Assembly: GCF_052425735.1 (NCBI RefSeq)
Contig: NC_135769.1
Coordinates: 30,566,001 to 30,630,000 of the forward strand
Length of the DNA stretch: 64,000 nt
Direction of reading: 5' to 3'
Source: Oculina patagonica
Taxonomy: Eukaryota
Shown here: in pieces, positions 12,259 through 64,000 of the stretch
How the letters are laid out: the number at the start of each line of letters is the position of its first letter
How positions within the stretch are numbered: the first letter of the stretch is position 1
The notes under the pieces: model-generated
What the model saw: only the letters and a program-made list of their open reading frames with translations
What the model was told of the DNA's origin: nothing
Database searches by the model: none
Program-made: the position numbers and the translations under genes

Positions 12259-13235
12259 TAGTTAACTACAAGCTAGCGTTTCTGTGAACCAAAACAAATT
12301 GATTTGTAAACTGTCAGTTTAACTTTTATTTGATCCAAAATTTCACTCTTGTATTAAAGTTACAGTCGGCTTGTACCTTCTCCATCTTCTGTATCTACAC
12401 GTCACAATAGTTGCACTGATATTATTAGCAATAGACCTGGTGCAAAAAAAAATGCTACGGCGTATGAATTACGTAACCTTTGCCAAGTTAGCTAACTATT
12501 TCATTATTTACTTCGAGTTCGTTAGTTAGTTATTTGGAACGGAAGGACTCGTCAAAATGACAGAACCTTCCCTTTCTCCAAAATGCAACTTCGTATTTTC
12601 TCTTTGTTACATAACTAGGCTACGAAAAGGCTTCATTTTTCTCAGGGGAAGTGAGCGAGCACGCGACCATGAAAGAAAATCGCTCGGACGAAGAGACGAG
12701 ACGCGCGCGCGAAATGATTTTCTCGCGCGCACGCACACTAGACGGACGCTGAAGAAAATGACGCCTTACTGTAGTCTAACCCACAACAGATAGATATAAT
12801 TTATCACACTTCGGACTTATGTATATCAAATATAATAATAAAAAAACGTTCAGCTGTACAAATGATGAGCACACTATATGATTCTTGCAAATAGATAGCT
12901 TAATATCTACACTTATCGCTTAAATACGGGCATAAATTTCGCATCGCGCTTTGAACACATGTAAAAATACCAAAACTAGTCACTTAGATAGGAGTTATAC
13001 ATATATATCTTTTTGAGAAATCAGCATTTTTCTCCTCTGAATTTAAGCTGAAAATGAGTTAGTCTACACAAATTGCAAGGGCCTACACGAGTCGATAGTT
13101 TATTTTTTACAAAACTATAAAAGCCGCAGTTCTTCCCGCACCACTGTGACGTCACGCGACCATGGCCTGGCACCAATACTGCGTGACATAACCAGCGTGA
13201 CATCAGAACGACGTGACTTGTCTAGTCAGCTGCTG

Positions 13236-16200: not shown

Positions 16201-19200
16201 ACAATACCTAGACCAAAGAAAACTCGACAATAACGGTGTGATTTTTTAGAACAGTACTCGACTTATGACAGGCACCAGGAGTACAGGAACCCATCAGGAA
16301 GTAAGGATGACTAGCGATGGCCAGGATGGAAATGGATTGAAAGGAAGGATCATTTCTTGTGTGTATGAAGTAGAGAGAGAAGCCGGAGAGATAAGTCTTA
16401 AGAAGTAGGGGCCAGTTACAGTGCGTAGGGCAGGGGGGGGGGGGGGGGAGGGAGGAGGAAAAGGGAGGGGGGAGGGTAAGGAGTGAGTGATTAACGCCAA
16501 AACATAAAAAAAATATATATAAACACTTTAAAAGTGCACTTTTTCCGTACCCCCCCCCCCCTCCACCACGAAAGAAAAGAAAAAGAAGACAAGAATGAAA
16601 GGGACCTTTCAAGTCCCAGACACTTAAATAGGGCAGGAAAGGAGGAGTGATCGTGGTGCGGTATGCTATAAATGCGTACGAACCTCTCTTTGTTTTTCTC
16701 GTTTAGCTTGTTCTTCCTTCTGCTTCAACTTGGATAAATTCTCTGCATGCGCCCTCTGTGGAATAAAAAAGAGGGATGAATAATTGGCCACAGAATATTC
16801 CTAACAAAAACTATAGAACATATATATTAAACAGCAAAAAGGTATGTATTCATGTAATTCTGGCAAACTTCAAAAGATTGACGGTCAAGTCTAAGACGCG
16901 AATGAAGTAACCAGCTCGGCTCCATCAAAAATCCTACAAAACCACCTGTTCTGCGGCTGTACAAACCCTGCTTCTGATTAAGCTTTTAATTTCGGCATCG
17001 TTTTAATCCGATTCTTAGTAGTCAGACGATACGCAAAACATATCAAACTCTGCTATGCAAACGCGTTTGCTCCAGACGAAATTCTTCCTTGGAAAGGCAA
17101 AGCTTCGTAGGAGAGTCTACGAAGGCTATTTACATACAAACAGCAATTAGGTCACTCACCTCAAAATTCATAATAAAGGCAGCAAAAATACCAAAGAAAT
17201 CTTCTGTGGTGGCAGACGTCGGTTTTTCCCCAAAGAATTTCACCGTTTCTCGGAACTCCTTTGTCGTCTTTTCTTGCAAGCTGAGCAGATCATTCAGTTC
17301 CCCTTCAGTTTCATCAATAATGCTCTAGAAGTTCCAACGAAAACGTTTTAGCTTTCATCAGTATTATTACAGAAAATTAACAATGCATGTTAATTTTATG
17401 CACCTTAATTTAAAGCATTGTTAATTTATTTAACACTAATTTACAGCAAAGTTACATGAATTCTACCTCTGCGTGATAGTCAGTCAGTCGACATGTCGTC
17501 ATTCAATATTGATTTTAAAATGTTTTTAGTTTTGTAACGTTTGTTTTGTCCAAGGGTAAATGGAGGAGCTGCTCACTTCGATTTTCTTGTGTTTTCTTGG
17601 TATTCTGTTGTTGCACGTTGTTGTTTTGTCTTGTCAAAAAGGCAGGTAGTTATATAAAATTTTTACCCATCAAGCATCAAATTCGCGTTGATTAAATGCA
17701 TGCAAACGTATATCACACGGAAATTCGCGTTAATTTAATGCATGTAAAGATAACTTTTCAAAAATTCACGTTAATTTTATTACGCGTAGATTTTGTTCGC
17801 GTTGTTAAAATGTTTCGTTATATTTCTATAATAAGGTACCATTTAATAAGTGTTCATACAAGGAATAGATTCAGGTCTGTGTCTGATAACATTCGTTTAC
17901 GCACGTCCGCTTTTTTGTTTTGTTTCAATTTATTTCACTTTGTGCCTAACCGCGAATAATCTTCGTCAGTTTAAAAAAAACCATAAAGAAATGTAACTTT
18001 TAGGCACACTTTGTATGTTTTCTTACATTGAAGTTAAATAAAGGGTTACAGTAAACAGACAAGATCTAAGGCTAATTCAAAACAACTGTTGCAGCGAAAT
18101 GTGTACAAAGAAACCCTTTGACAACTCGAAGCCAAAACATAGCTGGTGGTAACCGCGGGCGAACATGTAACCGGTGACCAGAAAGCGCGGGAAAATGGAA
18201 ACACGTGGCAAGAGGGTAAAGTGGTCTTTTATCTGATTGGCTAAGATCTTCAAGCAGCTTTATTTGATTGGTTAATTCTAACTCATAAGAAAACCTCAGC
18301 AGTACAAAGAAAATGTAAGACTTACCTTCACCGCCAGAGAAAAGCGATCATTTGGATCTTGCGATTTAAGTGATCGGAAGGCTCCAAGGTCTTTTTTCAG
18401 CTCCTATTTGAAAAGAAATGAATTAATCCGCAAGTGCAAACAGAAAGAAAAACCTTCAAGTTTGAAATAACATACCCATTTGAACAGAATAACAAATCCG
18501 AACGGAATAACTTGTTACAAACCTGCATTCCAGCCGATAAATCTTCTACTTCACATGAGACCATTTGCCCTGACACTAACAGAAGAAAACAGCAAAAATC
18601 AAAACAGGAAAAAATTGTCAAGTTTTTCCACTGAACACCTGTGGGGGGTGACTCTCATATGAAAGTGACGGGGATGCTCGTCGTCTCGCTTAGGGGTGTA
18701 TATTTTGGATTTTTGGTCTCGCTTAGGGTGTTCCGGGCAAAACGCCAATATTTTTTAGCCATAATGGTCTCGTTTAGGGTTACACACGAAGAAAGATACA
18801 AATATAAATTCTATTCTTAGTTTAGTGGTATCTTTTAGGGGTCAAAAAAACTTGAGCCACACCCAGATTGGTCTCTTTTAATTTTTTCAAAATTTCTGAC
18901 GAGCATCTCCGTCCGTTTCATATAGGAGTCCCCTCCCCCGGGTTGTTGGTCTTCCGATACGAAACAAGCTTCTAAACTAATCAAAAGGGCCACAATCACA
19001 TCCATGTGTAGTTTAGCTTCCAACACGTGATTATTTTAACTTCTCCACATTCCCAGACAACGATTTCAACTTTTACAAGTTTACACGAGTCTCTTTACTT
19101 TCGTCGCAACTTCATTGGTTAAGAAATGTTGCCTGTGCATGTAAGAAGCCAAATGCATCTTGCATGCGATAAGTGCTTTAACAAACTTGGAAAATGGAAA

Positions 19201-22200
19201 AAACCTACCTTTTGCAGCCGTTGGAACCGAAGGAATTTCCTCCTTGATGTTCAAAACTTCGGGACATTTTGATTCGATTGACTGCACTAAAAAGTGCAAG
19301 AGCGTCGACTTGTTATCTGACGTTTTAGTGTTGCTGAGCTAGAGAAGATAAAAAAGAATCAAAGGAGGAATGAAAAATTAAAATATATATGAATAAAGGA
19401 CAGAAAAGGAAGGAAATAATGAAAAAAGAGAGAAATTAAACATCAAGCAAACCGTTTTTAATGAGTCACGTTAGCTACGATGCGAGTATAAAAGGGACCT
19501 TCAGATCGGAGTACGAAGACGAGATCGACTACAAGTACTGACGACTTTTGAATTTCAATCCAGTTACGTTCCTAGAGCCTTAACTCCTTCCTGTTGCTGA
19601 CGGCAGACCAGTTAAAAAGAATGCGATCAGTACGCGATTGGTATGAAACGTGATAATCAAAAGCATAAGCACTAATTTTGAAAAGTCGTAACCGTACTAA
19701 CTCCGATCTGAAGGTTGCTAATATTGAATAAAAGGGAGCATTTGACGTATAATAAATTATAATAAATTTATGACTACAGACACGCGCGGGTACTGCCTTG
19801 ATTTATCTCCAAATTCTCAGTACTTACATGTAAAGAAATGTATGGAAATCTGTTAGGAGATGTTACACTTATACCTTGTTCAAATACTCAATCTTGAAGG
19901 CAGCAGCTGATCCTATTCTCATGTTGCCTTTGTTCATGTAATTACCCATCTTCAACACCAGCTGAAAATATCAGACAAACACAGCGATTAAGTGTGAGAA
20001 ACAGTGCCGGCAAATGCTTATGAAAAAAGTGATCGTCTTATGATCGCTACAGCATTTTAATCGTTTCAAGAAAATCAAGCCACACTGCTAGGAGCGGGAA
20101 AACTCCATACCTCTAAGACCTTCTGCAGTTTAGGACTTTTCCTCAGCTCTTCTGAAGCATCCAGAACAGATTCCAAATCCTACAAAAAAAAAAAAAAAAA
20201 GATTATTACTAAACGATTTCCACTAATCCAACGAAAACATAATAAGCAAAGACGACTGTGTTCATCCTGACTTATGACGCAAGTTTGCAGTAAACTTTGC
20301 TGGTTTCCAAACTTCTCAGCCAATGAAAAAGTAAACAAAAGCACGTGCAATTTTTCGACATGCTGCTATTTTAACGTCTCCGCCTCGACGACTAACTTGC
20401 TTAGTGATTGACCAGTTGCAAGCAACTGGAACCCAACAAAAATATGTCAAAATTTGTCAAAAAAAGAACAAAAACTAAATTGAGTACATTATTTTTTAAG
20501 GTACATGTATGCTCTACTTCTTACCGGCTTGATTTCTTCCACTTTGTCAGCAAAACGAGCTTTAAAGAGTAAGGCTTTCAGACGCTGTTTGTACCAGGAC
20601 ACTTTGCTCATCTGCAACAGTGAAAAATGCATAAATTTCAGCATCGACTGCATTTTTATCAAATTTCAGGCGTTATGCAATAAACTTAACAGAACACATT
20701 TTTGTAGCTGCCCGTAATTTTAGCGGAGAATATTCTGCACGGCAACACCATAACGTCCATCACTTGGATGAATTGAATGACTTAACACATCAAAAGAGAT
20801 GCTTTGAGTAATAAACTGTAAAACTTAGTCATACGTACTTCATAACAAAACCTGTCTGCCTTGTCCAACTTGGAAACATCGTCAGCAAAATACTTAAATT
20901 TCTGAAGCTGAAACAATAGAGACAAGAAACTTGTTTGTTACCGGCTATATCAAGATGCTGGGCCATCAGACAATTATTTCTAAAGAAATTACATGTAATA
21001 GGAGGTTAACAAGTTGCGCTGTTTTTTCTTTCTTTTCCTAGCGAGCCAAAGAATGGAAATAAGGAGTGCTTTCCATTTTTAAAACGCAACCGGTCGGACC
21101 AACAGGAAGTGACCGTTGTAAAATGGAACGACATTTTATATAAGTGTTATAATTTTAGTTGGTTTACAGTTGTCTTTACCTCTTCTTTATCCGGAGCGTA
21201 CAGGAGAAGTTGTTTCAAATGAGACTCACTAAACTTCTTTTCGTCCATTGCTAGAAGCGATTGTTTGATCTCCTCAAACGGTATTTTCAAGTGGCCCAAT
21301 AAAATTGCTGTCGATCAAAATGAACACAAACTTATCAGCAAAGGCAACAACTAAAAACAAAACAAAAAAACAAAACAAAAACAGACGAGATATGACTTGT
21401 TACTCACAAATGTTGTAGGATTTCTTTGGATTCATCACTGCTGGTTTTTCTGGCTTCTTTTCATCTTTGCCTTGAGAAAAAAAAAACAAGAATATTACAA
21501 TCACTTGACGTGTATAAGGTTTGGAAATTTGACAGACAATTTAGTGAGAAGACAAACTTACTTGATGCTCTCTGTATAGCGCTGAAACTCTGCTCGAGTT
21601 GTATAAATTCAATGACTTCTTCTGATGGCTCGTTGTGCCCCAACTGAAAACGAAAACAAGTACATTGGAAATTGAGTTGCAACAAAAGGAGGAACTGGGG
21701 AACAAGATTATGAGTGAGACAGCTTAGCTTTGAATTCTGTACGTTTACTTGGAAACAGAGTACTTATTTGACATCAAACCCTGGCTGGAAAACAGCTAAG
21801 CCAGGGTCTTAAACAGTGAAGCAAATTTGCAATTTCGTCATTCGCAGTCCATCTAATTCTTTCTTAAAATCACCCATCATTGTTCCTTTTTGGTTTTAAA
21901 CCTACTGTACAATGTTTTTCTCCCTTAGTGCACTAAACGTTTGAGGTTTTCTTTCGTTGAAGGTAATTTAAGACACCGAAAGATGTCTGACGAGTCTGTT
22001 AGCAGAGACAAAACATGCGTTTCAGACTAGCCACAACTTCTTGCGCACTAAAACGGGAGTTGTGTTGAATTTTAGAGTTAACCGCTGTGCACAGAGACCA
22101 TACCTGAGCCCACACTGTATCTTCCAGACCGGCAATACTCAGTTTTTCCCAGTTGACTCTTTTAAGCTGCATTTGTCCAGGGACATTTCCAAGGCCGCCC

Positions 22201-25200
22201 AGAGCTGGCGGTGGCGGAACTGTTGGTGGAGGAGGGGGAGGTGGTGGCGGAGGAGGGGGTGGGGGTGCTCCCATGGGGGGAGGTGGGGGAGGGGCGGCGC
22301 TTGTGCTTGCTCCATCTTGGTTCCCTGGGAAAAGAACACAGTTGAATGAATGAATGAATGATATGGGTTCTTATATAACACATTTACAAAGCTCAATGCG
22401 CTTCACAACAAGAACTGTGGGAGAGACCGGACTTATCAGGCGCCTTTGGCAGTAGTGATCCGTCCATGGGTATGATATCACCCCACCACCCAACCCAGAG
22501 ATACATGTGAATAGAACAGATCACAACACCTGGAATTCCGTGCCCTACTCTTTACGATTAGTTTCAGTTCACCAAATTAGTTTTATACAGCACGTTTGAA
22601 AAGGTAAATTTTTAATACAACAACAGCATCAAATCCGCTCTCTTCTGTCAAACTTACTTGAAAAGAGAACGCGTTACAAGGGTTTAACATATTACAGTAG
22701 ATCCCGATTTCTCACAACCTCGATTTCTTTAACCTTCCGATAACTAGAATCAAAAGTCAATTTCCTTGGATTTGCCACACAAAGTTGAACAATACAATTT
22801 TACTTCTAATTTCTTAAACCAATTTTCGTTCCGAGATATCGGGATTCGACTGAAGATCAACGCTTCACCTTACGATTTTTGTGTGTAACAGACGTACATA
22901 CCTTCTGTTTCTTTTTCTTCATCATTGTCCTTTCGTCGTGCTTTCACTGCAGCATCTAACGGATTCTCTGCCTTGTTTGGAGAGCTTGGTTCACTACCAT
23001 GATCTTGAACAAGGAAAAAAACAAAAACAGAAGGAAACAGCGATGAAGGAAAAAAAAACTGCCACATAGTGTTTACTGACCAAAATAACTCTTGTGCTCT
23101 TCACACGTACATCTTAAAGCAAACACAAACAATAATTTACAAATAAAGCAGGGAGAAGTCTAAGAACCCAAAAAAATTCGACACTTATGACGTATAACTC
23201 CACGGAGATATACGAGGTATCTGCGACTGGTTGCTATTGTTATAGACACGACACGGATCTGTGGAGAGCTACGTCATTAGTATGGAACATTTTTGGGCAA
23301 ATCTGAGAAAAGAAAGGAATTGAGCCCAGAAAGAGAGGCAAAGAGGGCTACATTGTTAGTGGTGAGAAATAGCAATGATAGTAGTATATAATAATTAACA
23401 TCAATAATACTACAGCTTATTTACCTCCAACCTCTTTCATTTCCGATATCATTTTCTCGCTCTTATCTAACGCTTCTTTAGTTTCCATCAACTCCTGAGT
23501 AGTGATGGCCAACTGATGCTGAATTTTCTCCACAGACTCTCCAGATGCCTCCCCAGAACCATCCCCAATACCACTATCCCCGCTCACTGAACGTGGGGTT
23601 GAAGTAACGATTCCTGCACCAGGGGATGTCGGTGTCCCGGGCTCGGGTGAGGATGCTGTTATGGGGCCATGATGGACCTGCGCTTGAGTCTGAATACTTG
23701 TTACACTGGACTTCCTGATCTCATCTGCTAATAATGCATCGGCCAGCTCTTCTGTTTAATGAGCAGAAAACAAAAGAAACAGCTTGATTTCTCTGTTCAC
23801 AGCCTCTCTATTTTTCAATGCAGAAGAACGTAAGAGAAACAGGGGATGCGAAAAACGGGGGAGGGAAGGGGGTGTGCGAAAATGCCAGGAACATGAATTA
23901 AAAAGCACTTTTAGACTGGTTTCCTCTCCTACTCCTCCAATAGACATGTACCACAAATCCTCACAAAGCAGAAAGCATTTGCCAGTTATGAAACCATGGA
24001 AGATCGAATTTTTTCAATAAGCATCTCAGCATTTTTCTTGATCCATTCAGTTTGTCTCTAAGTGTCAGAGCAGTGTTAGTTCAGTGTTTAAACTGTATCA
24101 GCCGATGGCTCGATAAATTAACTGTAATGTGTGGCTTATATTCTCCAAACATTTCTTGGCGATTCACCTAACTGTTTTGCAGATAAGATGGCTGCAAAAT
24201 GCACTAAGATGTCTAACACACTCATGTATAAATCAATTGAACTACTCAGTGTAAATGAGCAAAGTGTCAACACTTTGTTTTGTGGCATTTACATTGTTCA
24301 GTTTGTACTTTACTCAGTTTCCTCAACCCACCCCTCCCCCTTCCCATGTTCACATGCCCTACAGCACATCACAGGTAGCTTAATCACAGTATTCTGCTAA
24401 TAAATCCCCCTCTCACGGATTCTGTTCTCTAGAGCGTCCAATATAAATTTTATGGAACTTAATCTTACCAAGTCCTGCAAGATCAAGATCTACATCGTCG
24501 TCGTCCCACCCTGAATCAGGCGTACCATTTCTGGATCTTGTGTCACGCACTGGCACAGTATCCAGGTCTGATCCTGCCAAACAGTAACAAATCTGTCATT
24601 TTTAAATTTTATTTACTGGTATGGGCTTCTATTTTCTTTTCTTTTGCTTCTAGCAAGAAAAAACTATTTAACACCTGAATGCAGCTATCATGGGAGAGTG
24701 GAGGTTTTTACTTTAACGTCGAGCAAGATTACTTCAGTACATGAGGTAATTATGATAAAATATCTGAAACAAAGGAGACTAAGGGAGAACAGCATACATT
24801 TTCTGTATGATGTCAATTCCTTTCAGCCATATTGTCAAATTGTAGGACAACTGCTTTCAGTTAGATATCGAAATGGCTAAAAGATCAAATGAAAAATAGC
24901 AATGTGCCACCTACCATAACCAAATCCAGGACTAAGTCGACCCCTGGCGGCACCTGATGAAGGCCAGTGACCATACGGCTCCTCAGATACAGCTACAAAA
25001 TAAAAAGAGTGCACAAAGTCACATGCATTTAATCTAGAATCTGGTCAGAGCCACATGGTCTCACTCTGATTTTTTTTCCTTGCTTTCAGTACAAGTGACA
25101 TGGTGCATTTCAACTTCCTCCTTACCTGCTCCAGGCGTGGTATTGCGAGGTCTTGGTGCATCTGCAAGCCGCATGGCCTGCACTCTGTACAGTACATCAA

Positions 25201-31200: not shown

Positions 31201-32750
31201 AATCAATAAATGATCAAGCATTTATTTAAACAGCCTTGGACACTTTACTTTCAGACTGTTTGCAGCTATTTTCAGAATATTAGCTTGATGTGGTTTCAGT
31301 CAATTGATAACTAAATGATCTTGTTTTTTGAAAGATGACTTATAATGCAATTTGCTCACTAGTTGTCTGCTAACATAACAAGCTGATACCAAGCTGCAGA
31401 TAGCTAAATAAAACAAATTTTATCATTCCTAAATATCAGTCACCGACCACCCAGAATCCATAATGTGTATAATCAAAACATTCAGTCCACTATTCAGTAT
31501 TCTACTCTTGCATTTTGTGCTTACCAGAAATGAATTCTTTGATTTTCTTAATGTCAGGAAGCATTGCAAAGCTCTTTGATAGTTTATTTTGAAACTGATA
31601 CTGAAATAATATGTCTGTTTATAGTTCAAGACTATTTATACGATAACTCAGGAATTTAACAGAATAACTTTACTTAAAGCATAAACGCAACAACGCAATT
31701 GTGTTCTTTACAAGCAAAAAAATTAAACCTACTAATTAATTGCCTGCACGCTCTAAAAATGTTAACATATTAACCCCTATATTCCCTTTTGTTACAAAAA
31801 TTAAACAATTTAATGGTACGTTATAAAATCCTAAAGCTATATAATCACAGATAGCGACTACAGGTGCACACAGAAATATAATTAATTGTTATGTACAAAT
31901 AAAAAAACCTGAAGGTTGAACAATGCAATTAAATTCGTCTGAATTCCGATCTACAAATTATTTCTTTCTATGGGATATATCAAGGGCAAAGCTACTTATG
32001 AAAACGTAAATGACAGTTAAGATTGAAGCAATTTATAATCGCTTAGCAGAAGTAACAGAGTAAGCTTATGTTGTAACTACAACTCTATTAAATAAAAATA
32101 AACTTACTTCATGGCTGAAATGTCAACTTTTGTGTTTGATATCTACACAAAGACAAGAACTTTGATCAATAATAAATAACAATCTACCAACTGACCTGAA
32201 CGAAAAAATCTCTCGCTCTTCTATACCGCGAGGAGGAACTTTTTCCTCCACGTTTGTCAGTTATTCCAATATCTGCAGCGCCTGCAATAAGCACTATAGA
32301 AATCGTTGGTCCACAAGTATCGATCATTTGTCCTACTTGATCCTCATTCATATGTCTCAAGTTAACACCATTTATACGAAGAATAAGATCGCCGCGCCGA
32401 ATGCCGACATTTTGAGCCGGACTTCCTTGCTCTACTTCTGCAATGAACACGGGACCTTTGCCGCGGACAGCAAATCCAAAGCGACCTCTTCGACGACGCA
32501 GATCAAACGTTCGAATTCGAGAAATTACAGCGAGCGCTGGAGGAACTGTCCGCGATCGTTTAGCTAACAGGATTATTTCTTCTTTGCTTAATCCTTGAAC
32601 GTTCTCCCCATTGACTTCGAGTATTTGATCACCAGGTTGAAGTCCAGCTCTTTGTGCAACGGAATTCTCGTCGACAGAAAGGATTACAACAGGCGCCCGT
32701 CCACCGACGGTAAAACCGAAAGCTTCGGGCCAATTTTCGTTCGTTTTCAT
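13236..32750 (-). CDS. GRID2IP: Delphilin (GRID2IP)-type formin: PDZ-PDZ-HHD-PDZ-HHD-coiled coil-FH1-FH2 plus long proline-rich tail; 27 exons, ~2,100 aa
   Basis: Exon 32196-32750 starts MKTNENWPEAFGF (delphilin-type WPExFGF) and holds two PDZ domains. 30754-30908 and ~30420-30601 encode a harmonin-homology domain (KQLIKALNQYARDRSIEQLAQSL). ~29814-29900 is linker. PDZ3 spans ~29002-29094, ~27485-27554 and ~26798-27098 (GFGFTLSG...AGIKAGDHILEING...VVQLLKGSGSQPTL). HHD2 is at ~25660-25885. Linker exons ~25126-25242, ~24914-24992, ~24469-24574, ~23424-23752, ~22902-23004. FH1 22104-22324. FH2 exons ~21561-21643, ~21408-21471, ~21180-21307, ~20838-20907, ~20526-20611, ~20111-20179, ~19875-19961 (MGNYMN), 19209-19338 (LSNTKTSDNK), 18523-18575, 18326-18403, 17160-17324 (FFGE...DFFGIF). 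Then 16684-16755 and the last exon 13236-15812. Confidence 0.92.
16072..16138. mobile_element. 67-bp MITE with TAG...CTA termini and 8-bp TSD
   Basis: TAGCCTGTGTACAGCC ... GGCTGTACACAGGCTA, flanked on both sides by AAACAAAA. Confidence 0.8.
18638..18942. mobile_element. Degenerate MITE of the CCCGGG/poly-G terminal type
   Basis: GGGGGGTGACTCTCATATGAAA ... TTTCATATAGGAGTCCCCTCCCCCGGG. Internal GTCTCGCTTAGGG repeats. No clean TSD. Confidence 0.55.
19493..19720. mobile_element. MITE
   Basis: AGGGACCTTCAGATCGGAGT ... ACTCCGATCTGAAGGTTGCT inverted termini. Confidence 0.6.
26305..26758. mobile_element. hAT-like non-autonomous element
   Basis: TATACCTGCCAACT ... AGTTGGCTGGTATA inverted termini. 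Subterminal TCTCAYGCC repeats. Confidence 0.55.
27641..28671. mobile_element. ~1-kb non-autonomous TIR element; degenerate short relatives at ~26120-26300
   Basis: ~40-bp perfect TIR GTGTGGTTCCAGAAAATATCCATACCCCCACCACGGAGGGAATT. Flanked on both sides by AAT. Confidence 0.85.
30030..30300 (-). mobile_element. Degenerate SINE copy
   Basis: GAGAGGCACTATGAGA..AAGGTGTCTTGCCCAAGAAC and GCTAACCAT...AGGCCAC shared with 60960-61200. Confidence 0.65.
30923..31084. repeat. Tandem duplication, ~80-bp unit x2, at the acceptor of delphilin exon 2
   Basis: AAATTATAAAGTGRTTTTTGTGTGAAGCTTGCTGTGGTGTTACTTAAAGCAATTTAA... occurs twice, 80 bp apart. Confidence 0.9.
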
Positions 32751-35700: not shown

Positions 35701-36355
35701 TCCTCGTTTTGCCATGGTTCCATGCCGCGCGGAAACGCGGAATGTTTTCGCCGTGTAGCAGAAGCAAGTTTTGCTTCTTGGAGACAAAAAATTGACCTTG
35801 GAAACAATGCTTCCCGCATGGCAAAACTGGGAAACGTTGGAGAAACATTGACGCGCTACGAAAGTTTCTGGAAACATGTTCCTCGTTTTGCCAGGCCTTA
35901 AGGACGTAACTGCTGTTCGAAAAGTTTGATCGACTTTATAAGACGCTTATAGCTACGAAGTTTTTGGTTTGGTAGTCCTGTGTCAATTCAGTGAATGTAC
36001 AATCCAATCCGGCATCTTTTAGACAGTTTTTTAAAGATACAAGTACCAGGCTTTGTTCACTGACTATGAGTACGTTTGCTCTCGCGAAAATGTATCGAAG
36101 CTCGCGCGCGAATGAAATTCTGACGCGCGCAAAATAATGAAGCGCGCGTTCGAACTAGTGACGAAATTAAACGTCAAAACACATTATGACGTCAGAAAGC
36201 CGCCGTTTTACAAAGCATCAAAGTACTCCGAGCTACTGTACAAACAGCTGCATCATGTAGAGGTTTTAGAAAAGCAACTCGAGCTAAATGAACGTTCACC
36301 GAAATTTTGGATATCAAATTGACGGAATGCGCAAGTGACGAAAAGTGAGTTTGGC
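32751..36355. promoter_or_regulatory. Divergent promoter/5'-UTR region between the two formin genes, with three full CRE palindromes
   Basis: ATGs at 32750 (-) and 36356 (+) point away from each other. TGACGTCA at 34388-34395, 34407-34414 and 36187-36194. CpG-rich patch (CGCGCGCG) at ~36080-36150. Confidence 0.55.
35643..35898. mobile_element. Harbinger-like MITE
   Basis: TAA-GGCCCAGCAAAACGAG...GAAACATGTT and AACATGTTCCTCGTTTTGCCAGGCC-TTA inverted termini. Confidence 0.7.
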
Positions 36356-39300
36356 ATGAGTACAACAGTCGAAAATAAAGAATCTACCAAAGAAGGTATG
36401 CGGTAATACTTGCTATGCAATTTCACAGTAATCTTCGTAAACTTAATTGTCGCTGGTTAGTGATAATTCCATGATCAGTTTTTCAGCCCTGTGCTATTAA
36501 GATTTAATCGACCCGCGCGATACACATTTCAGGAAGCGCATTGTTTCTGTAAGTCAGTTCTAGCTAGAGACGAGCAGACTTTCTTTCGGAACATGTCTGT
36601 CTTTATATCGATATCAGAAACGATTGACAATAACTTTGCGCTTTCTCTCAGAAGCGATCCAGCAGAAAATGGTAATTAACTAGTGTAGAAAAAGTGTGAA
36701 CTCGGTTGAAAATTGTTTGTGGCGTGATCTTTAAGCTTACTATTACCAAGAGAAAACACTAATCCAGAGCAAACATATCTAAAAAGCCGAATCATGTTGA
36801 TGAAAAAGTGTTTAGTTCAATTGCAGAAAAGCCGATAGAATAATGTAGTGGAAGTCGAAACTTTCTTTTTTATATATTAAATGTTATGTAGGTACACTAT
36901 GTTCAGCGCTTGTCCACAAAGAAAATTTTAATTCTGAAATTCCTTCAGTTTTGTTGTTTTAAACTTACAAATTTGCATGCTATCAAAATGACTGTAAAGT
37001 AGTTTACTAAAACAACTAAAACATTGAGTTATAGGAAGAGAAAGGGGCAGGAAACTAAAGGCAATACTAAAGCAATACTGTTGTCACCAGCAACAGTTCT
37101 TTTCAGAACTGCTCTCACCCGGACGATTACACTATACGAACAACTAATAGTATTTCAGCCCTTTATTTGTCAGGAAACATATGCATTCCGATAAGTCATT
37201 CATGCCTTAGTTTGCACTTCGCTGCAAAGTGATTCCAAACGTTCATTTAAATAGAGTTTCCTTAATCCCTAAATCCCAATTTGATTTGATTGCTGGCATG
37301 TTGTCAATTACTGTACGCGCTTACGTTTCACTTCTAAGCAATTTTGCAGAAACACTTTTTGTTCTCAAAGGTTTTCGTTCGTTGAAGTCTCCTTTTTTGG
37401 AACTTAGAAACTGCTCAATTCTGTTACCACATCTACGAAAAAAATTGTTGCTCATAAAACAAGTAGTTATCAAACAATTAAATTAAGTAAATTTAGTGGA
37501 AAGCCACAAGTATGTTTATGTTTTCTCAAGAACGCTGGATACCTTTGTGAAGTTAATAATAAGTAGATATCTTTTCACTTGTTGCCTTTTATTGTTTTTC
37601 ACGTTATTTGTCTTCATTTTATGATCTATCACTGTGCCAGAGACTTAAAAACATTGTCAGAAAGTGAAAATTTGATTGATCCTAATAACTTGACTATAAT
37701 TTACTAAAACAATAAGAAAATTCATTTAATTGCTTCCCTGCAATAAAGCTGAGGAATAAATTACGTCTACGATCGAGAAGGGAACAGTATTCTCGAAAAC
37801 AAAATGCAGCAGCACTGTATATCTTCTGTTTTAATTTTTGCCAGCATTGCCATCGTCTTTTTTTTCAGATGAGAGATCAAATTACTGGAACTTTGTCAAC
37901 AGTACCTCGGACTTTTTCAAATGGTAATTCATATCAAAGGGATTATTTCCCAGTTATCTTACAATTTGTTACAAACTTTTTTTTAATATAAAATAACAAA
38001 AGTAACTGATTATATTCTCATTTGCTTTTAATTTACTTTAGCAACTGGAAGTTAATTCTTCCTTTTTCTGTTGCAATTCTGCTGTTTTCTGCTACTTTTA
38101 TCACCAATAATGGCGTCACGTTTGCTGTTAACATTTGGGTATTTCCAAGTAAGTAATCTTTTTTCTGTGGGATAATGAATCACAAGAAAAGAGAAAGAAC
38201 TGATAAGAACACTATGTTGAATTTTTATTTTGCTAACACAGGTTTTGCTGTGCTCATGGCTTCCTTTGCGTGCTCAGCTGAGCTACAAAAATGGATTCCC
38301 GCAGGTAATTATTCGATGCTCGTACAACATCACTTGATGTAATTGTCGTTAGGAGGTAAAATATGCCACCAAATCTATTCTTTTATTGCGAACTATTCTA
38401 TTCTTTTAATGCGAACTAAAGTACATAGTAAATAAAACCCTTCAGGCGGCTGATATATTGAAGGATAATGTCAAGGCTGAAAGATTGTCCGAAAAATGAA
38501 CAGTTGGCCGAGAAGCAAAGCTTCGAGGGTAACTGTGAGCTCAATTTACACTCTATCTTATTTTACTACGAGAAAGTGTCGCCAAGGTAACAACTGTGTT
38601 GTCGATAATATCATGTCATAACAATAACAACAAATTTTAAAGAGAAACGAATTGTTTTAGCACTTGCAATAATTCAAATCTTTTATATTATTTTATTAGC
38701 AAGCGCTTTTAATTAGTCAAATATTATGAGTTCGTAAGTGTATATATTTATAACACAATATAAACTTTGCATTTCAATCTTTACATAGACTTCTGGCAAA
38801 ATCAGCGACCGCCATTTCTTCCAGTTGTGCCCTGTGCCCCTGCCCCACCTCCTCCACCACCGCGTGCCCCACCCCCTCCTCCCCCAAATACGGTAAACGG
38901 GCACAAACGGCAGAGGTTGGATTGCAGGAAACTGTCCTGGGAACAACTCAGCCCAGACCTCGTGAACAGGGACACGATTTGGAAAAAGGTATCTAACATT
39001 GTAAATTTGTATTTTTTATTCCAAACGTACGAAATTTTTAATATGAACGTAACCGAAATCCATGCTTCCTAACATACTGAACATTTTATTGTTAACTTGA
39101 TAAAAAGTGAAGGCGAGAAAATAACTTATTAACTTTTTAATTTAAAATTTCTTCCAGGTTAGAAAACATTTGCCTTTGGAAGGCATTTTTGACTCAGAAG
39201 ACATAATAAGAGAATTTTCGGTCATACCATCCACAGGTAAGCTATGTAACATGCTGGGTTTTTTTTTTTTTTTTACATAAAAAGCCATTGCACAATAAGT

Positions 39301-42300
39301 TAAGTTTTAAAAATACCAGGTAACTTATGAGAGTTTATGTACATTTCATCCGCCTTTGCTGATAAACTTATGAACTTTCGAAATAAATTAAATCAATGCA
39401 ACTACGTTGGAAAGTTTGATAATACGAGAAGACGATTGGCACAGACGAGTTGCGGCGTTTTAAAAATGGCAGGCATGCTCTCATGCTCGGGATACCTAGT
39501 AAAAATACTGCAACAATGAAAACCGAGCAAAGTCAATCATGAGATACGTCAATACAGCGAATGTTAGAGGGTAAAATCATCGCTGACTAAGGATCTGATT
39601 ACATGGCGAATCATGGCAGCCCCGGCTGAAATTTCAACCCGGTTTGCCGGGCTGAGATTTCAGCTCAGCTTCCAAAACAAATCGTCGTGAAAAGACGTTT
39701 GCGATTGCATGAAGAAAGTTTCATCCCGGGCCGAATTACCACCCCGGCTGAAATTTCCAGCCTGGTTTTTGAAACCGGGCTGGAAATCTCAGCCCGGGCA
39801 AACGGGCTGAAAAACCTCATGTAATCGCGTGCCAACCCCTCGTTGAAAGTGAGCTTACGGATGCGCAGTGATGGTTTTCAACGAAAGAAAATGGCTGCCC
39901 CGAATATTTTTCAGTTTTAAAAAGTGTTCAACCCGGGCTAAAATTCGCCATGTAATCGCAACAAACAGCCCGGCAAACCGGGCTGAAATTCGCCATGTAC
40001 TCAGGCCCTTATTTCTAAACAGGTATAATTGTTTTGTCCTTGATGCGATGATTTTCACCGATTCCCTAATGTCAAAAATAGTAACGTCGATGCATGAGCA
40101 TGAGTATGACAAACTGAATTAATTTTAAAATTACGGTACAAGCCTTGTATTTACTTTATAATATGTTCCGTGTCTTTTTCCTAAAGGAACCTCGCGAAAA
40201 AAAGCCAAACGAGAAAATGCCATGGACGAGAAAAAGATTTTTAACATCTGTAAGTATTGCTTCTAGAGGTTGGGTAGAAACTGACGGAATTGAGTAAATT
40301 TGAATGGCGACTTGAATAAAGTGAATAAACGAAGATGAGTTTTCAGGTCAAACTACGGAAAAAATTAAATTTCTGAGTAAAATTTATTAACGAAACAGAG
40401 GTTTTTAGACCAGGAGTTGTTGTTTGTTTTTCTTCAGGCAAAATTCCTGCCAGACACAAAAGGGCCAGGCTGTCTATTTTGCAGCGTAAAATTGCGAAAT
40501 GTTTGGAAGCAGGAAGCACATTTTATAGCAAATGCCCAGTGACTGTATTTCCATATGTCTATGAATCAGTTTAATATTGGTATTGTTACTTTGTGTTCAT
40601 TATTTCCGCCATGTTTTTCAGCAATCGTGTTGACGCATTACAAGCTGAAGGCAGAAGGAGTGGCACAATGTCTAATATCCGGGACTTCTGATTTGACATC
40701 TGATGTGCTTAGACAACTGTTGGCATTTGCCCCAGATGAGCGAGAGGTAAAGAGAAATGCCCTTGCTAGCCTTGCAAGTGCATGTTAATGAATGAAGTTT
40801 AGTGTTTTAATCGCTATAATACATACAAATGGACAATCTCTTGACAGTCGGATATTGAGAATCTTATCAGTCGGCAGTCTCGTTAATCGTACTATGCAAT
40901 TTTACTCTAACCCTGAGCCCAGGAAGAAAGTTCGCGTGGCCAAAATGAAATTGTTCCAATAATTATCCATTATGCAGTTTCTAAACACACAAGAGCGAGT
41001 CGAACGGTAAATGCATACATTTTCCTAAAGATGATACTCAGAATGAAGATAGGTGGTGATGCCGGGAACTTATAGAATACAGGGTCAGGATAGAGTATTC
41101 ATAATGTGTTTTTTCTTTTTAGGCAATAGCTTTAAGAAAACGTGAGAGGGAGAACGAGTTTTCACTCGAACCAGCTGAGCGCTTCTATCTTCAGGTATTC
41201 TAGCGTGAAAAATTGTAAATGTTAGTGTTGAGTCTAAAATAAAATGTTGTGTGTCAACCAACAGCGTTGAAAAGCAATTGGAGAAAAATATGAATGAATT
41301 TTCTTTTGGCAGATTGCGGCCTCGGTGCCTTCTTACAAAGAAAGACTTCGAACAGTATTACTTAAAGCACAGCTTCAAGAAAGGATCGCACAAATTAAAC
41401 CAGTAAGATACTTGAACTACCTACAATTTATCTTATTTGTAGATTACAGAAAGGAAGAGAGGATGATGATGATGATAATGTCGATAGCATTTCTCTCACG
41501 TTGACCGGAGGTCCCCGGTTCAAGACCTCCCCTTGCCACTAGCTGGATTTGTTTCTCGGTTGTCCCGAGTTCAAATCCTCGACCACGCTTTGTATATAGC
41601 CAACTGGTCTGCCTCCTGCCGGGCCTTGTTATGTTCATTTAAGATTATTTGTTTCCTCTGTTTCAGTGGCATGCCTGTAAACTAGCTATCTCGTTGAGAT
41701 ATGAAGCTGAGTGCATGACCACTATAAACATATATTTATATTTTATTTATTTATTTTTGTTGTTGACCACGTCAGTCACACTTAACCTGTTCATCGCGTT
41801 TTGATTCTGTCAATAAAGCGCCTTTCCTTTTTTGGTCAAATCAATCAAAGACGGTTTTGATCGTCATCGTCAATCTAAACACCTTTTAATTAATCGTCTT
41901 GTTTTCAGTTGTAGCTTTCCTCGACACAATATACGGCTTAAACTGGATAGGAACGAAGACCGACGTCTGTTTACCCGGACTAAATCATGTCCTGATTTTT
42001 TATTTTGCATTTCAGCATCTTGAAACAGTCATTACCGCGTGCCAGGAACTCATGTCCAGTGAAAAGCTCGCAACTTTTATTGAGGTATGGAAAATATGTG
42101 TAACACGTGCAGTCAAGTGTTTATCTGCCAAGTAAAATAAAAGATGCGTACTGATCGATGCTGCACAATTTTTTATCCATAGCTGCTTCTAACGATGGGA
42201 AACATAATGAATGGAAGCGAAATTTGTGCTTTTAAGATAACTTTTGTTACAAAGGTAAGCTTGACAGATTATGAGATGTATATATTAGGTATATACTCAA

Positions 42301-45140
42301 GGAGTGGATAGCGTTTTTGGCGCGCGCTGATTGGCTACTCAAACTCCGAATATCCTTTGTTATTATTCAACACATGCGCGCGCTGCCCAAATATGGTCAA
42401 AATAATAAAGTTATCTGTCATCCGTACATAACAGATATCCTGCGATATACGTAGGTTGCGAAGATTCATCCGAAATCTTGTAAAGCGCTACGTAATTACA
42501 GTTTTTCTATCTGCAAAATATGTTTCGTTGACAATTTGTTGAATAATAAAACAATTATCCTGCTTAATCTTGCGGAATATCGTCTGATTTTAGCCAACTC
42601 GGCCTACGGCCTCGTCGGCTAAGTATCAGGCGATATTCCGCGCGATTTCGCAGGATAATTGTTAACTATTCACCTCCGAGCAACGCGTGCGAGAAAATTG
42701 TGATCTTTTTACAAGAATAAACTAGTCAAAAATCATCCTTCGGGCTTTATCATCTCACTGTTTTAAAAGTATATACATACTTAAACAACTGCGGCTTCGT
42801 AAATATCCACCACTATAGCCACCTCCACTTCGATGAATAGATAGCCTGTTTGAGCAGGTCAGAGATTTTCCAATGATACTATTGCTTGTACTCTATACCC
42901 AGCTGATGGATTACAAATCGTCCGTGAACAAGACCACTTCAGTGCTGGATTACCTTACTAGGGTCATTATCACCAAATGTCCGCACATCGCAGCTTTAGA
43001 AGATGATCTTAGACACGTGAACCAGGCATCGCGAGGTCAGTAAAAATGAATTCTCATAACAAGCATTTATAAGGATCGACTTCAGTAACAGAAAGCAGAA
43101 ATCAAACTGGAACAAATCACAAATACATCAAGCCCACCAGCAACTCCGCACCACAACAATAACGACAGCAACAATAACAGTAATTGTAAAATTTATTAAC
43201 TATTCATGAGGGTGCAAACCAATCCCATGACTGTATTCAGATCACATGTACACAACTATAAACCCCAATACAAATCAAACAATAGAATTAACTTTTGATA
43301 CAGACTCCTGCTCAGCTAATTAGTATTCATTAACTTTTGATACAGATCTCTACTGATTCGCATAACAAAACTTTGCATTCAATTTATTGTTTTCATTTCA
43401 CAAGTAGAATAAAATATTCGCGTCTGACCTGTATGAGCGTTTACAACACTCGCCATTGTAAACGCCCATACAGATCTTCCGCTCATATTTTATCTACTGC
43501 ATAAATGTCTTATTTTTACTATACAGTGTTCTTTGGGATGAAGTTTTCTTATATTCCCTTTCAAATGATTTAACCAAAATTCAAGACCAGAATCTAACAA
43601 GTTACGAGTAGCTTTCAGTATATTTTGGACACTTCTTAAAATATAAAATTAAAAAAAATATAAAAGAACGTCAAGGTATTGAAAAATCATCGATTGCTTT
43701 CCTCTTATCGTTTGATTTGATTTCAGTTCCATTCAAGTCACTTGACAAGGAAATATGCGAACTGTCCACAGAAATTGAGGTAACAGCAGTGTATACCACA
43801 ACTCAATGTACTTGCATTTTTTTAGCTACTCAATGCATGTACATAACAAATGTACATAACAAATGTTTTAAATGCTCTTTCTATTAGGTTCTGGAAGAAG
43901 ACGTCGAGAAAATAAATAATGACTGCATAAAAGATGAAGGAGACTCTTTCCGCGCTAGTATTGAAGTATCCTTTCAGTGAACTATACCATCACGGCATGT
44001 GCTTGCGCAATGCGTTTGCTTTATAGTGAATACATGTATATTTTTATTACAAAATACAGAAACATTAGATATGTAATTCCAGAGTTTTGATTGGCTTAGT
44101 GCCACTGGATATGAAAAATTATACCATGCCCAACAAACATGGTCGACAAAAATCGTCTTCCGTCTCTTTGCCAAAACAAAATACAAGATTTAATAAATAA
44201 TAAATAATAATACATAATATTTTAAGAGGAGGCCTCCAATCACCTTGGGGTGGTTTTCAGGAGGGTCCTCTGAGAAAATAAATGTTAAACCTTAAAATAT
44301 ATTAAAATCTAAAAGACAATAAAAAGACAAAACCTATGCGGTATGCTAAAAAGATTAATTATAAAAACTAGAACAAGATCCTTTATTTAAGGATATCTAG
44401 TTGTTATTAAACAATTATTTCGCTTGCGGTTGTTGGAAAGAGATGATCATAGTCAAATAGGGGCTACTCGCCTCGTTGGTTTACCCTATCTACCATCTCA
44501 TATCTAACGCGCGCTCGTGGAATAGTTGCATGATAAAATCTGAAAAGTTCCGATCCTTGGAAGAGAAATAAACTGTAGTGATAGCAAGTCAGAATAATTC
44601 TTTGACAAACTCCTTAGCTATTTGCTGTCTCGGCAAAAGAAGAGCTTAAAGACGTGCTGTCGCTTCGGAAGAATGCCAAAAGAAAGTTCACCCTCCTTGT
44701 TCAGTATTTTGGTGAGGATTCTAGTAAGCCTGAAGAATTCTTTGGAATTTTCGCCACACTTCTTCGCCAGTTCGAGGTAAATTTTAATCAAAATTAATTG
44801 CCATGTGCTTTCGTTTCTTTTCAGTCTTTTCACGCAGTCTACACGCAATAATATCCTAAATGACTAGACTTATCTTGCATCAAGGCAATATACTCTTCAT
44901 GCAAACCACAGTTGAGCCCGCGATGAGTGGACTCGTGTTGATGTTATTGCCTGCAGAGAACATAATATCACACAACTTTTCGAAAATTATACCTCTGATA
45001 GAACGATAGGGAAAAAAACATTCATTCAGCTACCAACGGGCCACAAAAATGGATCGAGTCGAAAATTTATAACTAAATCGAAAGTATAAATGTTTATTTT
45101 ACTTTTTTCGTTTTAGGATGTGTTGAAGACGTACAAGTGA
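36356..45140 (+). CDS. Delphilin-derived formin with predicted N-terminal transmembrane hairpin (TM-TM-FH1-FH2), 17 exons, 493 aa
   Basis: Exons: 36356-36395, 37869-37923, 38042-38148, 38242-38304, 38789-38988, 39158-39236, 40187-40249, 40622-40746, 41123-41194, 41313-41402, 42016-42084, 42183-42254, 42903-43035, 43727-43779, 43888-43965, 44618-44776, 45117-45140. All are GT-AG and phase-compatible, total 1,482 nt, with no internal stop. FH1 is APAPPPPPPRAPPPPPP. FH2 motifs: KLSWEQL..TIWKK, FNISIVLTHYK, LLAFAPDERE, YKERL, MGNIMN, AFKI, LMDYKS, YFGE..PEEFFGIF. The FH1-FH2 exons are high confidence. The first four exons rest on splice signals and phase consistency only. Confidence 0.85.
39590..40008. 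mobile_element. Harbinger-like MITE with internal CCGGGCTGAAATTT repeats (intron 6 of the plus-strand formin)
   Basis: GGATCTGATTACATGGCGAAT ... ATTCGCCATGTACTCAGGCC inverted termini. Many CCGGGCTG/CAGCCCGG units. Confidence 0.7.
41500..41730 (+). mobile_element. 5'-truncated tRNA-derived SINE-like repeat (second family)
   Basis: B-box-like GGTTCAAGACC, followed by a body with a second GAGTTCAAATCC and a (TTTA)n-like tail. Confidence 0.5.
43966..44617 (+). other. U12-type (minor spliceosome) GT-AG intron
   Basis: Donor GTATCCTTT matches the U12 consensus RTATCCTT. Branch-site-like TTCTTTGAC at 44598-44606, 11 nt before the exon. No extended polypyrimidine tract. Confidence 0.85.

Positions 45141-46657: not shown

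Positions 46658-47101
<444 letters not shown>

Positions 47102-50446: not shown

Positions 50447-64000
<13,554 letters not shown>

Follow-up and report, generated by a model that had tools for sequence, protein, structure and literature searches.

A minimal, probably delphilin-derived formin of stony corals with a predicted two-helix membrane hairpin

Formins at membranes and the coral gene

The formin delphilin (GRID2IP), with representatives in human, mouse and zebrafish, reaches membranes through PDZ-mediated binding and N-terminal palmitoylation. INF2-CAAX, FMNL and delphilin carry prenyl, myristoyl or palmitoyl groups that are added post-translationally, and all retain their regulatory domains (see also PMC11194305). 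The class I formins of plants, e.g., Arabidopsis AtFH1, possess a cleaved signal peptide, a cell-wall-binding extracellular proline-rich domain and a single transmembrane (TM) helix (PMC11194305). A 2024 review knows of no integral-membrane formin outside plants (PMC11194305), which agrees with the initial annotation of the locus described here, and a membrane-embedded formin layout has so far been described only in plants.

In a 64,000-nucleotide stretch of Oculina patagonica genomic DNA (the window), we characterized a gene that probably codes for a minimal formin with a two-helix membrane hairpin, derived from delphilin by a partial inverted duplication. Its predicted product parallels INF2-CAAX, FMNL and delphilin in placing an FH1-FH2 module on the membrane surface, but the anchor would be a genetically encoded hydrophobic polypeptide instead of a lipid. 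It also recalls the plant class I formins, in that a (predicted) membrane anchor lies N-terminal to cytosolic FH1-FH2 and Rho-regulated autoinhibition is lacking. Unlike these, it shows no signal peptide and no ectodomain, has two predicted helices following a 35-residue polar head, and its FH2 domain is of the metazoan type; any resemblance is convergent and not homologous.

Gene structure, expression and conservation

The gene model comprises 17 exons (Table 1) and yields a protein of 493 residues, as originally proposed. Its first five exons have GT-AG ends at every intron boundary and join with phases 1, 2, 1 and 1 into a single open frame, as the initial annotation had claimed for the four short upstream exons and the FH1 exon. 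An in-frame TGA (36320) lies 5′ of the start codon, and the 5′UTR features two upstream ATGs: one at 36255, immediately followed by TAG, and one opening a short upstream ORF (36288-36338). The protein is laid out as the polar head, an uncharged stretch of 45 residues with two predicted helices around a tight turn, a linker of about 25 residues, a short FH1 and a complete FH2; neither GBD/DID and PDZ domains nor a DAD/WH2 tail were found in its 493 residues.

Table 1. Features of the coral formin gene and of the adjacent delphilin gene (window coordinates)
Feature	Position	Strand	Basis or remark
Delphilin/GRID2IP, canonical, head-to-head neighbour: FH1-FH2 exons	17160..22324	-	domain and intron comparison
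Delphilin/GRID2IP: first coding exon (two PDZ domains)	32184..32750	-	3.6 kb upstream of ATG 36356
5′UTR	36201..36355	+	RNA contig starts 36201-36238
Exon 1, coding part: start codon, polar head	36356..36395	+	model; joint 36395/37869 in X1, X2, X5
Exon 2: polar head, N24-S-T sequon, K31, first two bases of C32	37869..37923	+	model, RNA joints
Exon 3: invariant C-N-W-K, helix 1, turn, first half of helix 2	38042..38148	+	model, orthologues, RNA joints
Hydrophobic helix 1: L36-I52, 17 residues, mean KD 2.41	38052..38102	+	KD
Turn T-N-N-G (orthologues: T-K-K-D or T-N-K-D)	38103..38114	+	alignment
Hydrophobic helix 2: V57-S79, 23 residues, mean KD 1.69	38115..38276	+	split by intron 3 (38149-38241)
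Exon 4: second half of helix 2, linker	38242..38304	+	model, RNA joints
Exon 5: linker, FH1, FH2 lasso with both Trp	38789..38988	+	model, RNA joints, FH2 alignment
Exon 6 (FH2)	39158..39236	+	model, RNA joints
Exon 7 (FH2)	40187..40249	+	model, RNA joints
Exon 8 (FH2 knob, conserved actin-binding Ile)	40622..40746	+	model, Pfam, RNA joint, FH2 alignment
Exon 9 (FH2)	41123..41194	+	model; X1 loose end past 40747 matches its start
Exon 10 (FH2)	41313..41402	+	model, Pfam
Exon 11 (FH2)	42016..42084	+	model
Exon 12 (FH2, G-N-x-M-N motif)	42183..42254	+	model, FH2 alignment
Exon 13 (FH2 post, conserved Lys in D-Y-K-S)	42903..43035	+	model, Pfam, FH2 alignment
Exon 14 (FH2)	43727..43779	+	model
Exon 15 (FH2)	43888..43965	+	model
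Intron 15, U12-like donor GTATCCTT	43966..44617	+	sequence
Exon 16 (FH2 C-terminal part)	44618..44776	+	model, Pfam, orthologues
Exon 17: last 7 codons, stop (45138-45140)	45117..45140	+	model

Spliced RNA from three runs of two studies (X1 and X2 from one, X5 from the other) supports this model. The four junctions singled out at the outset (36395/37869, 37923/38042, 38148/38242 and 38304/38789) are all present in contigs of X1, X2 and X5, as are 38988/39158, 39236/40187 and 40249/40622; all seven joints, which connect exons 1-8, have GT..AG ends, and X10, a DNA-like run with even coverage of the introns, displays none of the seven. A single contig of 1406 nt (X2 record 16) reaches from the 5′UTR (36207) to exon 8, and at the boundary of intron 4 and exon 5 an unspliced piece occurs only at a depth of 2.7, versus 54.6 for the spliced contig. 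The RNAs begin 5′ of the first exon and contain all of exons 1-4, counter to one of the refuting conditions named in the initial annotation; no skipping of exons 3 and 4 and no start at the FH1 exon was seen among the RNA joints listed.

The FH2 assignment is supported by exons 8, 10, 13 and 16, which match colinear parts of PF02181 (14.5, 12, 26.8 and 29.1 bits), and by the full-length orthologue P0003 (76% identity), which matches profile positions 12-371 at 225.8 bits (cutoff 34.8); the Pfam search of P0003 returned FH2 alone, with PDZ and HN absent. The FH1 polyproline runs (residues 106-113 and 116-121, at about 38839-38886 in exon 5) lie directly N-terminal to FH2 and are kept in orthologues. 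The lasso Trp pair, the knob Ile, the G-N-x-M-N motif and the post Lys are conserved in alignment with DAAM1 and mDia1 and invariant in the family; judged from this alignment, the set of FH2 actin-binding motifs is intact.

Full-length orthologues from Stylophora and Porites, together with four transcript contigs of other corals, are 69-77% identical to the O. patagonica formin, an identity that extends through the N-terminus, and partial predictions from Pocillopora and Desmophyllum reach 79-80% over the part covered. The expectation that other corals keep the hydrophobic segment holds, since Stylophora, Porites and the four transcripts all retain C-N-W-K, helix, turn and helix; robust and complex corals alike conserve the whole architecture. 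Moreover, for this segment nine of the ten pairs give a dN/dS of 0.11-0.19 and the remaining one gives 0.41, compared with 0.06-0.13 for FH2, 0.2-0.55 for FH1 and 0.4-1.0 for the polar head. Hence, the hydrophobic segment is under purifying selection nearly as strong as that on FH2.

These data bear on the explanation that the gene model is an artefact of prediction, with exons 1-4 being part of another transcript or chance ORFs and the protein either starting at the FH1 exon or corresponding to the 3′ half of some longer gene of the delphilin type. Such an explanation could invoke the Nematostella relative labelled as partial in Pruyne 2016 as well as P0011, P0012 and P0017, database models of family members that suffer from truncation or fusion. 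It is, however, contradicted by the spliced RNA joining the 5′UTR and exons 1-8 in one molecule, by the four independent coral transcript assemblies with the same ORF (each with an in-frame stop 5′ of its ATG) and by the purifying selection on the hydrophobic segment. Further, the PDZ exons are read from the other strand, where they form part of a GRID2IP gene that is complete and includes an FH1-FH2 of its own. We accordingly rejected it as extremely unlikely: the formin is a real, expressed stony-coral gene, an observation far beyond chance.

The hydrophobic segment and its topology

Residues 36-80 are 45 successive uncharged residues bordered by K35 and E81; the uncharged run had been described correctly, but not its C-terminal flank, for which K84 was named although the first charge is E81. 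With a Kyte-Doolittle (KD) window of 19 residues and a TM threshold of 1.6, the best windows in the two stretches reach 1.94 and 1.77 and the FH2 maximum is 1.05-1.31, so that both stretches are hydrophobic and of TM length, as first suggested, and nothing in FH2 exceeds the threshold. The same 17- and 23-residue segments recur in all seven family members analysed (mean KD 2.2-2.9 and 1.6-2.05), and both helices have a low hydrophobic moment (0.01-0.19). The second helix has a near-invariant core, F-A-V-N-I-W-x-F-P-x-F-A-V-L, that includes invariant Asn, Trp and Pro residues, and additive estimates of its insertion free energy come out unfavourable, at +2 to +4.5 kcal/mol (Hessa-type scale). 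Being marginal on this scale, it may not cross the bilayer unaided. AlphaFold places a helix-turn-helix at the segment in both models, at low confidence (pLDDT 27-66). For the first 105 residues, the nearest neighbours by language model are CHUP1, TM formins of plants and small membrane proteins of viruses, at low scores that make them a lead only.

Taken at the level of sequence, the conserved pair of greasy helices most likely embeds the formin in a membrane. A different interpretation would be that the segment does not span a bilayer, and forms instead a monotopic hairpin that dips into a single leaflet or into a lipid-droplet monolayer, or a buried module for oligomerisation or partner binding in a soluble formin. 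The shortness of helix 1 (just 17 residues), the central Pro and Asn of helix 2, its unusually strong conservation, which suggests specific contacts, and the low confidence of the structure models all speak in its favour. We nevertheless hold it to be improbable, given 45 residues without one charge, the high mean KD of helix 1 in all orthologues, the membrane proteins among the low-scoring language-model neighbours, and the searches, in which no soluble-domain family matched the segment.

In the hairpin that we favour, helix 1 would serve as signal anchor and helix 2 would lead back across the bilayer, leaving both the N-terminus and FH1-FH2 in the cytosol. The appeal to the positive-inside rule made for this topology stands in part: Lys and Arg number 3-5 in the two outer flanks versus 0-2 in the turn, and these counts favour an N-in/C-in orientation in all seven proteins; the argument is weakened because the turn of most orthologues has two Lys. 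In addition, an N-x-T sequon at residues 24-26 of the head is kept in six of the seven proteins, which leaves room for a single-pass, N-out (type III) membrane formin. There, helix 1 alone would span the bilayer, with the 35-residue head in the lumen or outside the cell and bearing an N-glycan at N24, the K-K-D turn serving as the cytosolic positive flank, the second hydrophobic stretch lying in the cytosolic leaflet or acting as a protein-binding motif, and FH1-FH2 still cytosolic; such a layout would be nearer to that of the plant class I formins. Consistent with it, the middle residue of the sequon varies while the sequon itself is kept, and helix 2, whose hydrophobicity is only marginal by the additive measure, is conserved beyond the needs of a simple membrane anchor. 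We judge it unlikely: the invariant K31 and K35 directly before helix 1 disfavour translocation of the head, the T-N-N-G turn of O. patagonica has zero charge, and one orthologue has N-P-S and thus no usable sequon. Likewise, helix 2 lies above the KD threshold and, with a near-zero hydrophobic moment, is not amphipathic in the manner of an in-plane helix.

If the hairpin topology holds, an FH2 dimer would be held by four membrane helices and could nucleate filaments from profilin-actin and extend them right at the membrane. As it lacks autoinhibitory domains, its activity would be set by the place and amount of its synthesis and not by Rho GTPases. The 17-residue length of helix 1 may point to an early-secretory or endomembrane site.

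Relationship to the neighbouring delphilin gene

The head-to-head neighbour of the formin gene codes for a canonical delphilin of the architecture PDZ-PDZ-HN-PDZ-HN-FH1-FH2, and all 11 introns between its 12 compared exons match those between formin exons 5-16 in position and phase. Both proteins have FH1-FH2 and lack DID/DAD, and the top three Swiss-Prot fold matches of the formin are delphilins, which also show the highest identity (28%) but come just ahead of DAAM. The PDZ and harmonin-N-like domains are absent from the formin, whose ORF is N-terminally complete as indicated by upstream stops in the window and the four transcripts; at 493 residues it is dwarfed by the neighbour's orthologues (>2100). 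It differs further in its fast-evolving FH2, in which the loop after G-N-x-M-N is 5 residues shorter than in the neighbour. Its FH2 is 33-35% identical to that of the neighbour and about as similar to that of clam DAAM (30%), and a small FH2 tree of 10 sequences leaves the GRID2IP assignment without resolution, with the formin on a long stem branch. Judged by sequence and intron structure together, the formin is most probably a delphilin (GRID2IP)-derived paralogue and no orphan. We propose that part of the adjacent delphilin gene was duplicated in inverted orientation and that the copy retained the FH1-FH2 exons and swapped the PDZ-HN N-terminus for four new short exons. The gene order GRID2IP(-), formin(+), H3(+), TBCD(-) is also seen in Porites and Stylophora, and the duplication would be at least older than the divergence between robust and complex corals.

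A candidate relative is found in the sea anemone Nematostella vectensis, namely NEMVEDRAFT_v1g198008 (EDO48258.1), which Pruyne 2016 lists as 'GRID2IP (partial)' of the GRID2IP subtype. By eye, in the supplementary alignment of that work, where the published model is without an N-terminus, it shares with the coral formin the FH2 motifs C-R-R/K-L-S-W-E, E/D-T-I-W-K, F/V-L-D-Y-I/L-T-R and D-E/D-L-x-H-V as well as the shortened G-S loop. Its genome, like that of the coral, also has a canonical GRID2IP. It looks orthologous to the coral formin from these motifs, and if so, the duplication would precede the split of corals and sea anemones.

Gene model and transcription of the short formin

The initial annotation had proposed four small exons upstream of an FH1 exon; their coordinates were borne out, with AG/GT boundaries at all of them, and the phases that it gave (1,2,1,1) join the exons into one open frame from the ATG. 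Extension of this model by splice signals yielded a gene of 17 exons coding for a protein of 493 aa (hereafter the short formin), with an in-frame TGA upstream of its ATG. To check transcription, sequence contigs from four public runs were mapped to 34900-40800, which spans exons 1-8. Of these runs, X1 and X2 (a single study) and X5 (a second study) are RNA, and X10 is DNA-like, with even cover over introns and exons and none of the short-formin splice joints in this interval. In the RNA-run contigs all four junctions predicted by the annotation (36395/37869, 37923/38042, 38148/38242 and 38304/38789) appear as GT..AG joints, as do 38988/39158, 39236/40187 and 40249/40622. The 5′ ends of these contigs lie at 36201-36238, and a loose contig end behind 40747 corresponds to the start of exon 9. 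One 1406-nt contig (record 16 of X2) runs from the 5′UTR at 36207 to exon 8 and hence places the hydrophobic exons and the FH2 domain on the same mRNA. Skipping of exons 3-4 or a start at the FH1 exon, named beforehand as the contrary outcome, is absent among the joints listed for 34900-40800, and at the intron 4/exon 5 boundary an unspliced piece occurs at a depth of only 2.7 as against 54.6 for the spliced contig. We regard the gene and its architecture as solid, and the explanation of the short formin as an artefact as highly improbable.

At the junction 38304/38789 the Oculina patagonica protein is four residues shorter than its orthologues, between W-I-P-A and D-F-W-Q; most orthologues have L-R-H-Q here, and the shorter junction is confirmed by RNA in this species. 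The 5′UTR also carries two upstream ATGs, which may affect translation of the short formin.

A conserved hydrophobic head as a putative membrane hairpin

Full-length relatives were recovered from Stylophora, from Porites evermanni and, as four transcript contigs of 1.7-2.0 kb (P0010, P0013, P0015 and P0016), from RNA runs of other corals, whereas those of Pocillopora and Desmophyllum are partial predictions. All four transcript contigs have stops in frame upstream of the ATG, so the N-termini of their proteins are complete. Every full-length member keeps the hydrophobic segment, as the initial annotation expected of orthologues, in the same layout: an invariant K-C-N-W-K, a 17-residue helix (helix 1), a turn and a 23-residue helix (helix 2). 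The turn is T-K-K-D or T-N-K-D in the relatives as against T-N-N-G in the Oculina protein, and the core of helix 2, I-T-F-A-V-N-I-W-x-F-P-x-F-A-V-L, is nearly invariant. Regional dN/dS values (Nei-Gojobori) are 0.11-0.19 for the hydrophobic segment in 9 of 10 pairs (0.41 in the remaining one), 0.06-0.13 for FH2, 0.2-0.55 for FH1 and 0.4-1.0 for the polar head, indicating that the hydrophobic segment is translated and under constraint. In the Porites evermanni locus (L006), the equivalents of exons 3 and 4, the exons of both hydrophobic helices, are present as a tandem pair (12407-13029 and 15322-15922), which reflects a duplication within the gene or else an error of assembly.

Residues 36-80 are indeed 45 uncharged residues in succession. 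Over windows of 19 residues, Kyte-Doolittle hydropathy peaks at 1.94 (starting at residue 36) and at 1.77 (starting at residue 59), above the classical transmembrane threshold of 1.6, with at most 1.05 elsewhere in the protein. Across the family, helix 1 has a mean Kyte-Doolittle value of 2.2-2.9 and an additive insertion energy around or under zero; helix 2 has a mean of 1.6-2.05 and an unfavourable energy of +2 to +4.5 kcal/mol, attributable to Asn, Trp, Pro and Ser/Thr within it, these energies being only indicative. The hydrophobic moments (0.01-0.19) show that neither helix is amphipathic, so that amphipathic in-plane helices were rejected, and a signal peptide was likewise rejected on account of the 35-aa polar head standing before the hydrophobic stretch.

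In all seven proteins the two outer flanks carry 3-5 Lys+Arg as against 0-2 in the turn; this distribution favours an N-in/C-in topology, as does the fact that FH1-FH2 has to reach actin in the cytosol. AlphaFold returned helix, turn and helix in the head (pLDDT 27-66 there; 51 and 53 overall from 6- and 7-row alignments, and hence used weakly and for secondary structure only). Among the language-model neighbours of residues 1-105 are CHUP1, clusters of plant formins and small membrane proteins of viruses, whose low scores make them a lead only. We consider a putative membrane hairpin fairly probable. Its rivals can draw on an N-x-T sequon at residues 24-26 in six of the seven proteins, and on a conservation of helix 2 that exceeds the needs of a simple anchor. 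We judge a single-pass form with its N-terminus outside to be unlikely, and a monotopic or non-spanning module to be rather improbable.

Formin identity and probable descent from delphilin

Database and structure searches used single exons and an orthologue as queries, and the Oculina protein itself was analysed by script. Exons 8, 10, 13 and 16 match colinear parts of the Pfam FH2 profile, and a search with exon 16 against 1.8 billion representatives retrieved that orthologue, P0003 of Stylophora pistillata (492 aa), which scores 225.8 bits against Pfam FH2 and is 76% identical to our model over its full length. Alignment to the DAAM1 and mDia1 structures revealed that the expected FH2 motifs are all kept: the two lasso Trp residues, the knob Ile in N-x-S-I-x-L, G-N-x-M-N and the post Lys in D-Y-K-S. 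Two proline runs make up the FH1. GBD/DID and PDZ domains are absent from the short formin, which stops seven residues past FH2 and therefore has no DAD/WH2 tail.

The evidence on its FH2 subtype is mixed. The best three Swiss-Prot fold matches are delphilins (28% identity), with DAAM close behind (22-25%), and a tree of 10 FH2 sequences, covering part of the nine metazoan subtypes, did not resolve the branching, having long branches and a long short-formin stem. By descent, the short formin is probably a paralogue of GRID2IP (delphilin), a complete copy of which lies head-to-head with it: in the comparison of the 12 FH1-FH2 exons of that gene with exons 5-16 of the short formin, the intron position is the same in 11 of 11 cases and the entry phases are identical in all 12 (1,0,1,1,0,0,0,0,0,1,0,0), with 35% identity over 386 aligned positions. 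Fission of a single delphilin gene was rejected, as the neighbour holds its own complete FH1-FH2.

Earlier work apparently recorded a member of the family, though solely in the form of a truncated delphilin. Pruyne (2016) listed two GRID2IP-subtype formins in Nematostella, one of them (v1g198008) entered as 'partial', and this protein has motifs specific to the short-formin family (C-R-R-L-S-W-E, E-T-I-W-K-R, a shortened G-S loop, F-L-D-Y-I-T-R and D-E-L-L-H-V); hence, the origin of the family probably dates back to the first hexacorals or earlier. Whole-protein and profile searches, which reached saturation at 8000 candidates with shared words, had only scleractinian family members and distant formins among the matches listed; that these included none from Acropora, sea anemones or octocorals is uninformative on the range of the family. 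Under labels such as 'DAAM1-like', 'Delphilin' and 'partial', its distinctive feature is invisible in the databases. The N-terminal 100 residues found only the short-formin family among 5.8 billion proteins, and thus no donor of the hairpin, and a tblastn comparison of the model with the window detected exons 1-4 only once. It is possible that these exons arose de novo from T-rich sequence.

The short formin would resemble plant class I formins in function, in that a polypeptide anchor is predicted to be combined with a cytosolic FH1-FH2. Still, it does not belong among them, for it lacks their signal peptide and ectodomain, and has two helices and a metazoan FH2; it also lacks the PDZ-HN head that defines the GRID2IP subtype. 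A 2024 review of transmembrane formins withdrew four former non-plant candidates, leaving none supported now (PMC11194305). This agrees with the initial annotation, which knew of no described metazoan example, and we found no coral or cnidarian transmembrane formin in the literature. We lean slightly towards the view that these proteins constitute the first integral-membrane formin family of animals, restricted to hexacorals, which would have emerged as an inverted partial duplicate of delphilin in which four short hairpin exons, T-rich and possibly of de novo origin, took the place of the PDZ-HN head, to become a constitutively active, membrane-built actin nucleator convergent with plant class I formins. 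If real, such a conserved and expressed coral family would show that animals solved the same problem independently, and would provide a natural test of processive elongation by a bilayer-embedded FH2 dimer and a clear case of local inverted duplication followed by domain replacement, with parent and daughter still adjacent. In corals generally, membrane-bound actin assembly is relevant to phagocytosis, symbiosome handling, secretion and calcifying epithelia.

Neighbouring genes and repeats

The neighbouring GRID2IP gene also has harmonin-N-like (HN) exons and a third-PDZ exon, giving the architecture PDZ-PDZ, HN, PDZ, HN, Ser-rich region, FH1, FH2 and Ser/Pro-rich C-terminal exon; its orthologues yield products of 2141 aa in Porites and 2133 aa in Stylophora. 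The syntenic loci were reached via P0011 and P0014. The order GRID2IP(-), short formin(+), histone H3(+), TBCD(-) recurs in Porites evermanni and Stylophora pistillata, the TBCD exons completing a four-gene block syntenic in three corals, and the arrangement is therefore older than the split between complex and robust corals. In the Stylophora database model P0011 the short formin is wrongly fused with H3. Four intronic or intergenic stretches, in which the word depth is 10-600 times as high as in the sequence next to them in both DNA and RNA runs, are interspersed repeats.

Features of the short-formin locus and its surroundings
Feature	Coordinates	Strand	Remarks
Run of 141 N	1312-1452		Assembly gap or masked
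Delphilin/GRID2IP gene, complete	about 15000-32765	-	
GRID2IP two-PDZ exon	32750-32184	-	
GRID2IP FH1 exon	22324-22104	-	
GRID2IP FH2 exons	down to 17160	-	
GRID2IP intron at position of short-formin intron 15	18325-17325	-	U2-type; begins GTAAGT
GRID2IP long Ser/Pro-rich C-terminal exon	15812-15000 and beyond	-	
Interspersed repeats	35688-35884, 37067-37263, 38249-38642, 39628-40021		
Upstream ATG-TAG	36255	+	5′UTR
Upstream 16-codon uORF	36288-36338	+	5′UTR
Upstream in-frame TGA	36320	+	
Short-formin ATG	36356	+	
Stretch with inverted 'CCGGGCTGAAATTTC'-type arms	39580-40000		MITE-like
Short-formin intron 15	43966-44617	+	U12-type donor GTATCCTT; TTCTTTGAC element 11 nt before acceptor
Short-formin stop	45138-45140	+	
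Histone H3, intronless	46673-47101	+	1.5 kb 3′ of short-formin stop
TBCD (tubulin-folding cofactor D) exons	50632-58205	-	Colinear with Stylophora TBCD gene
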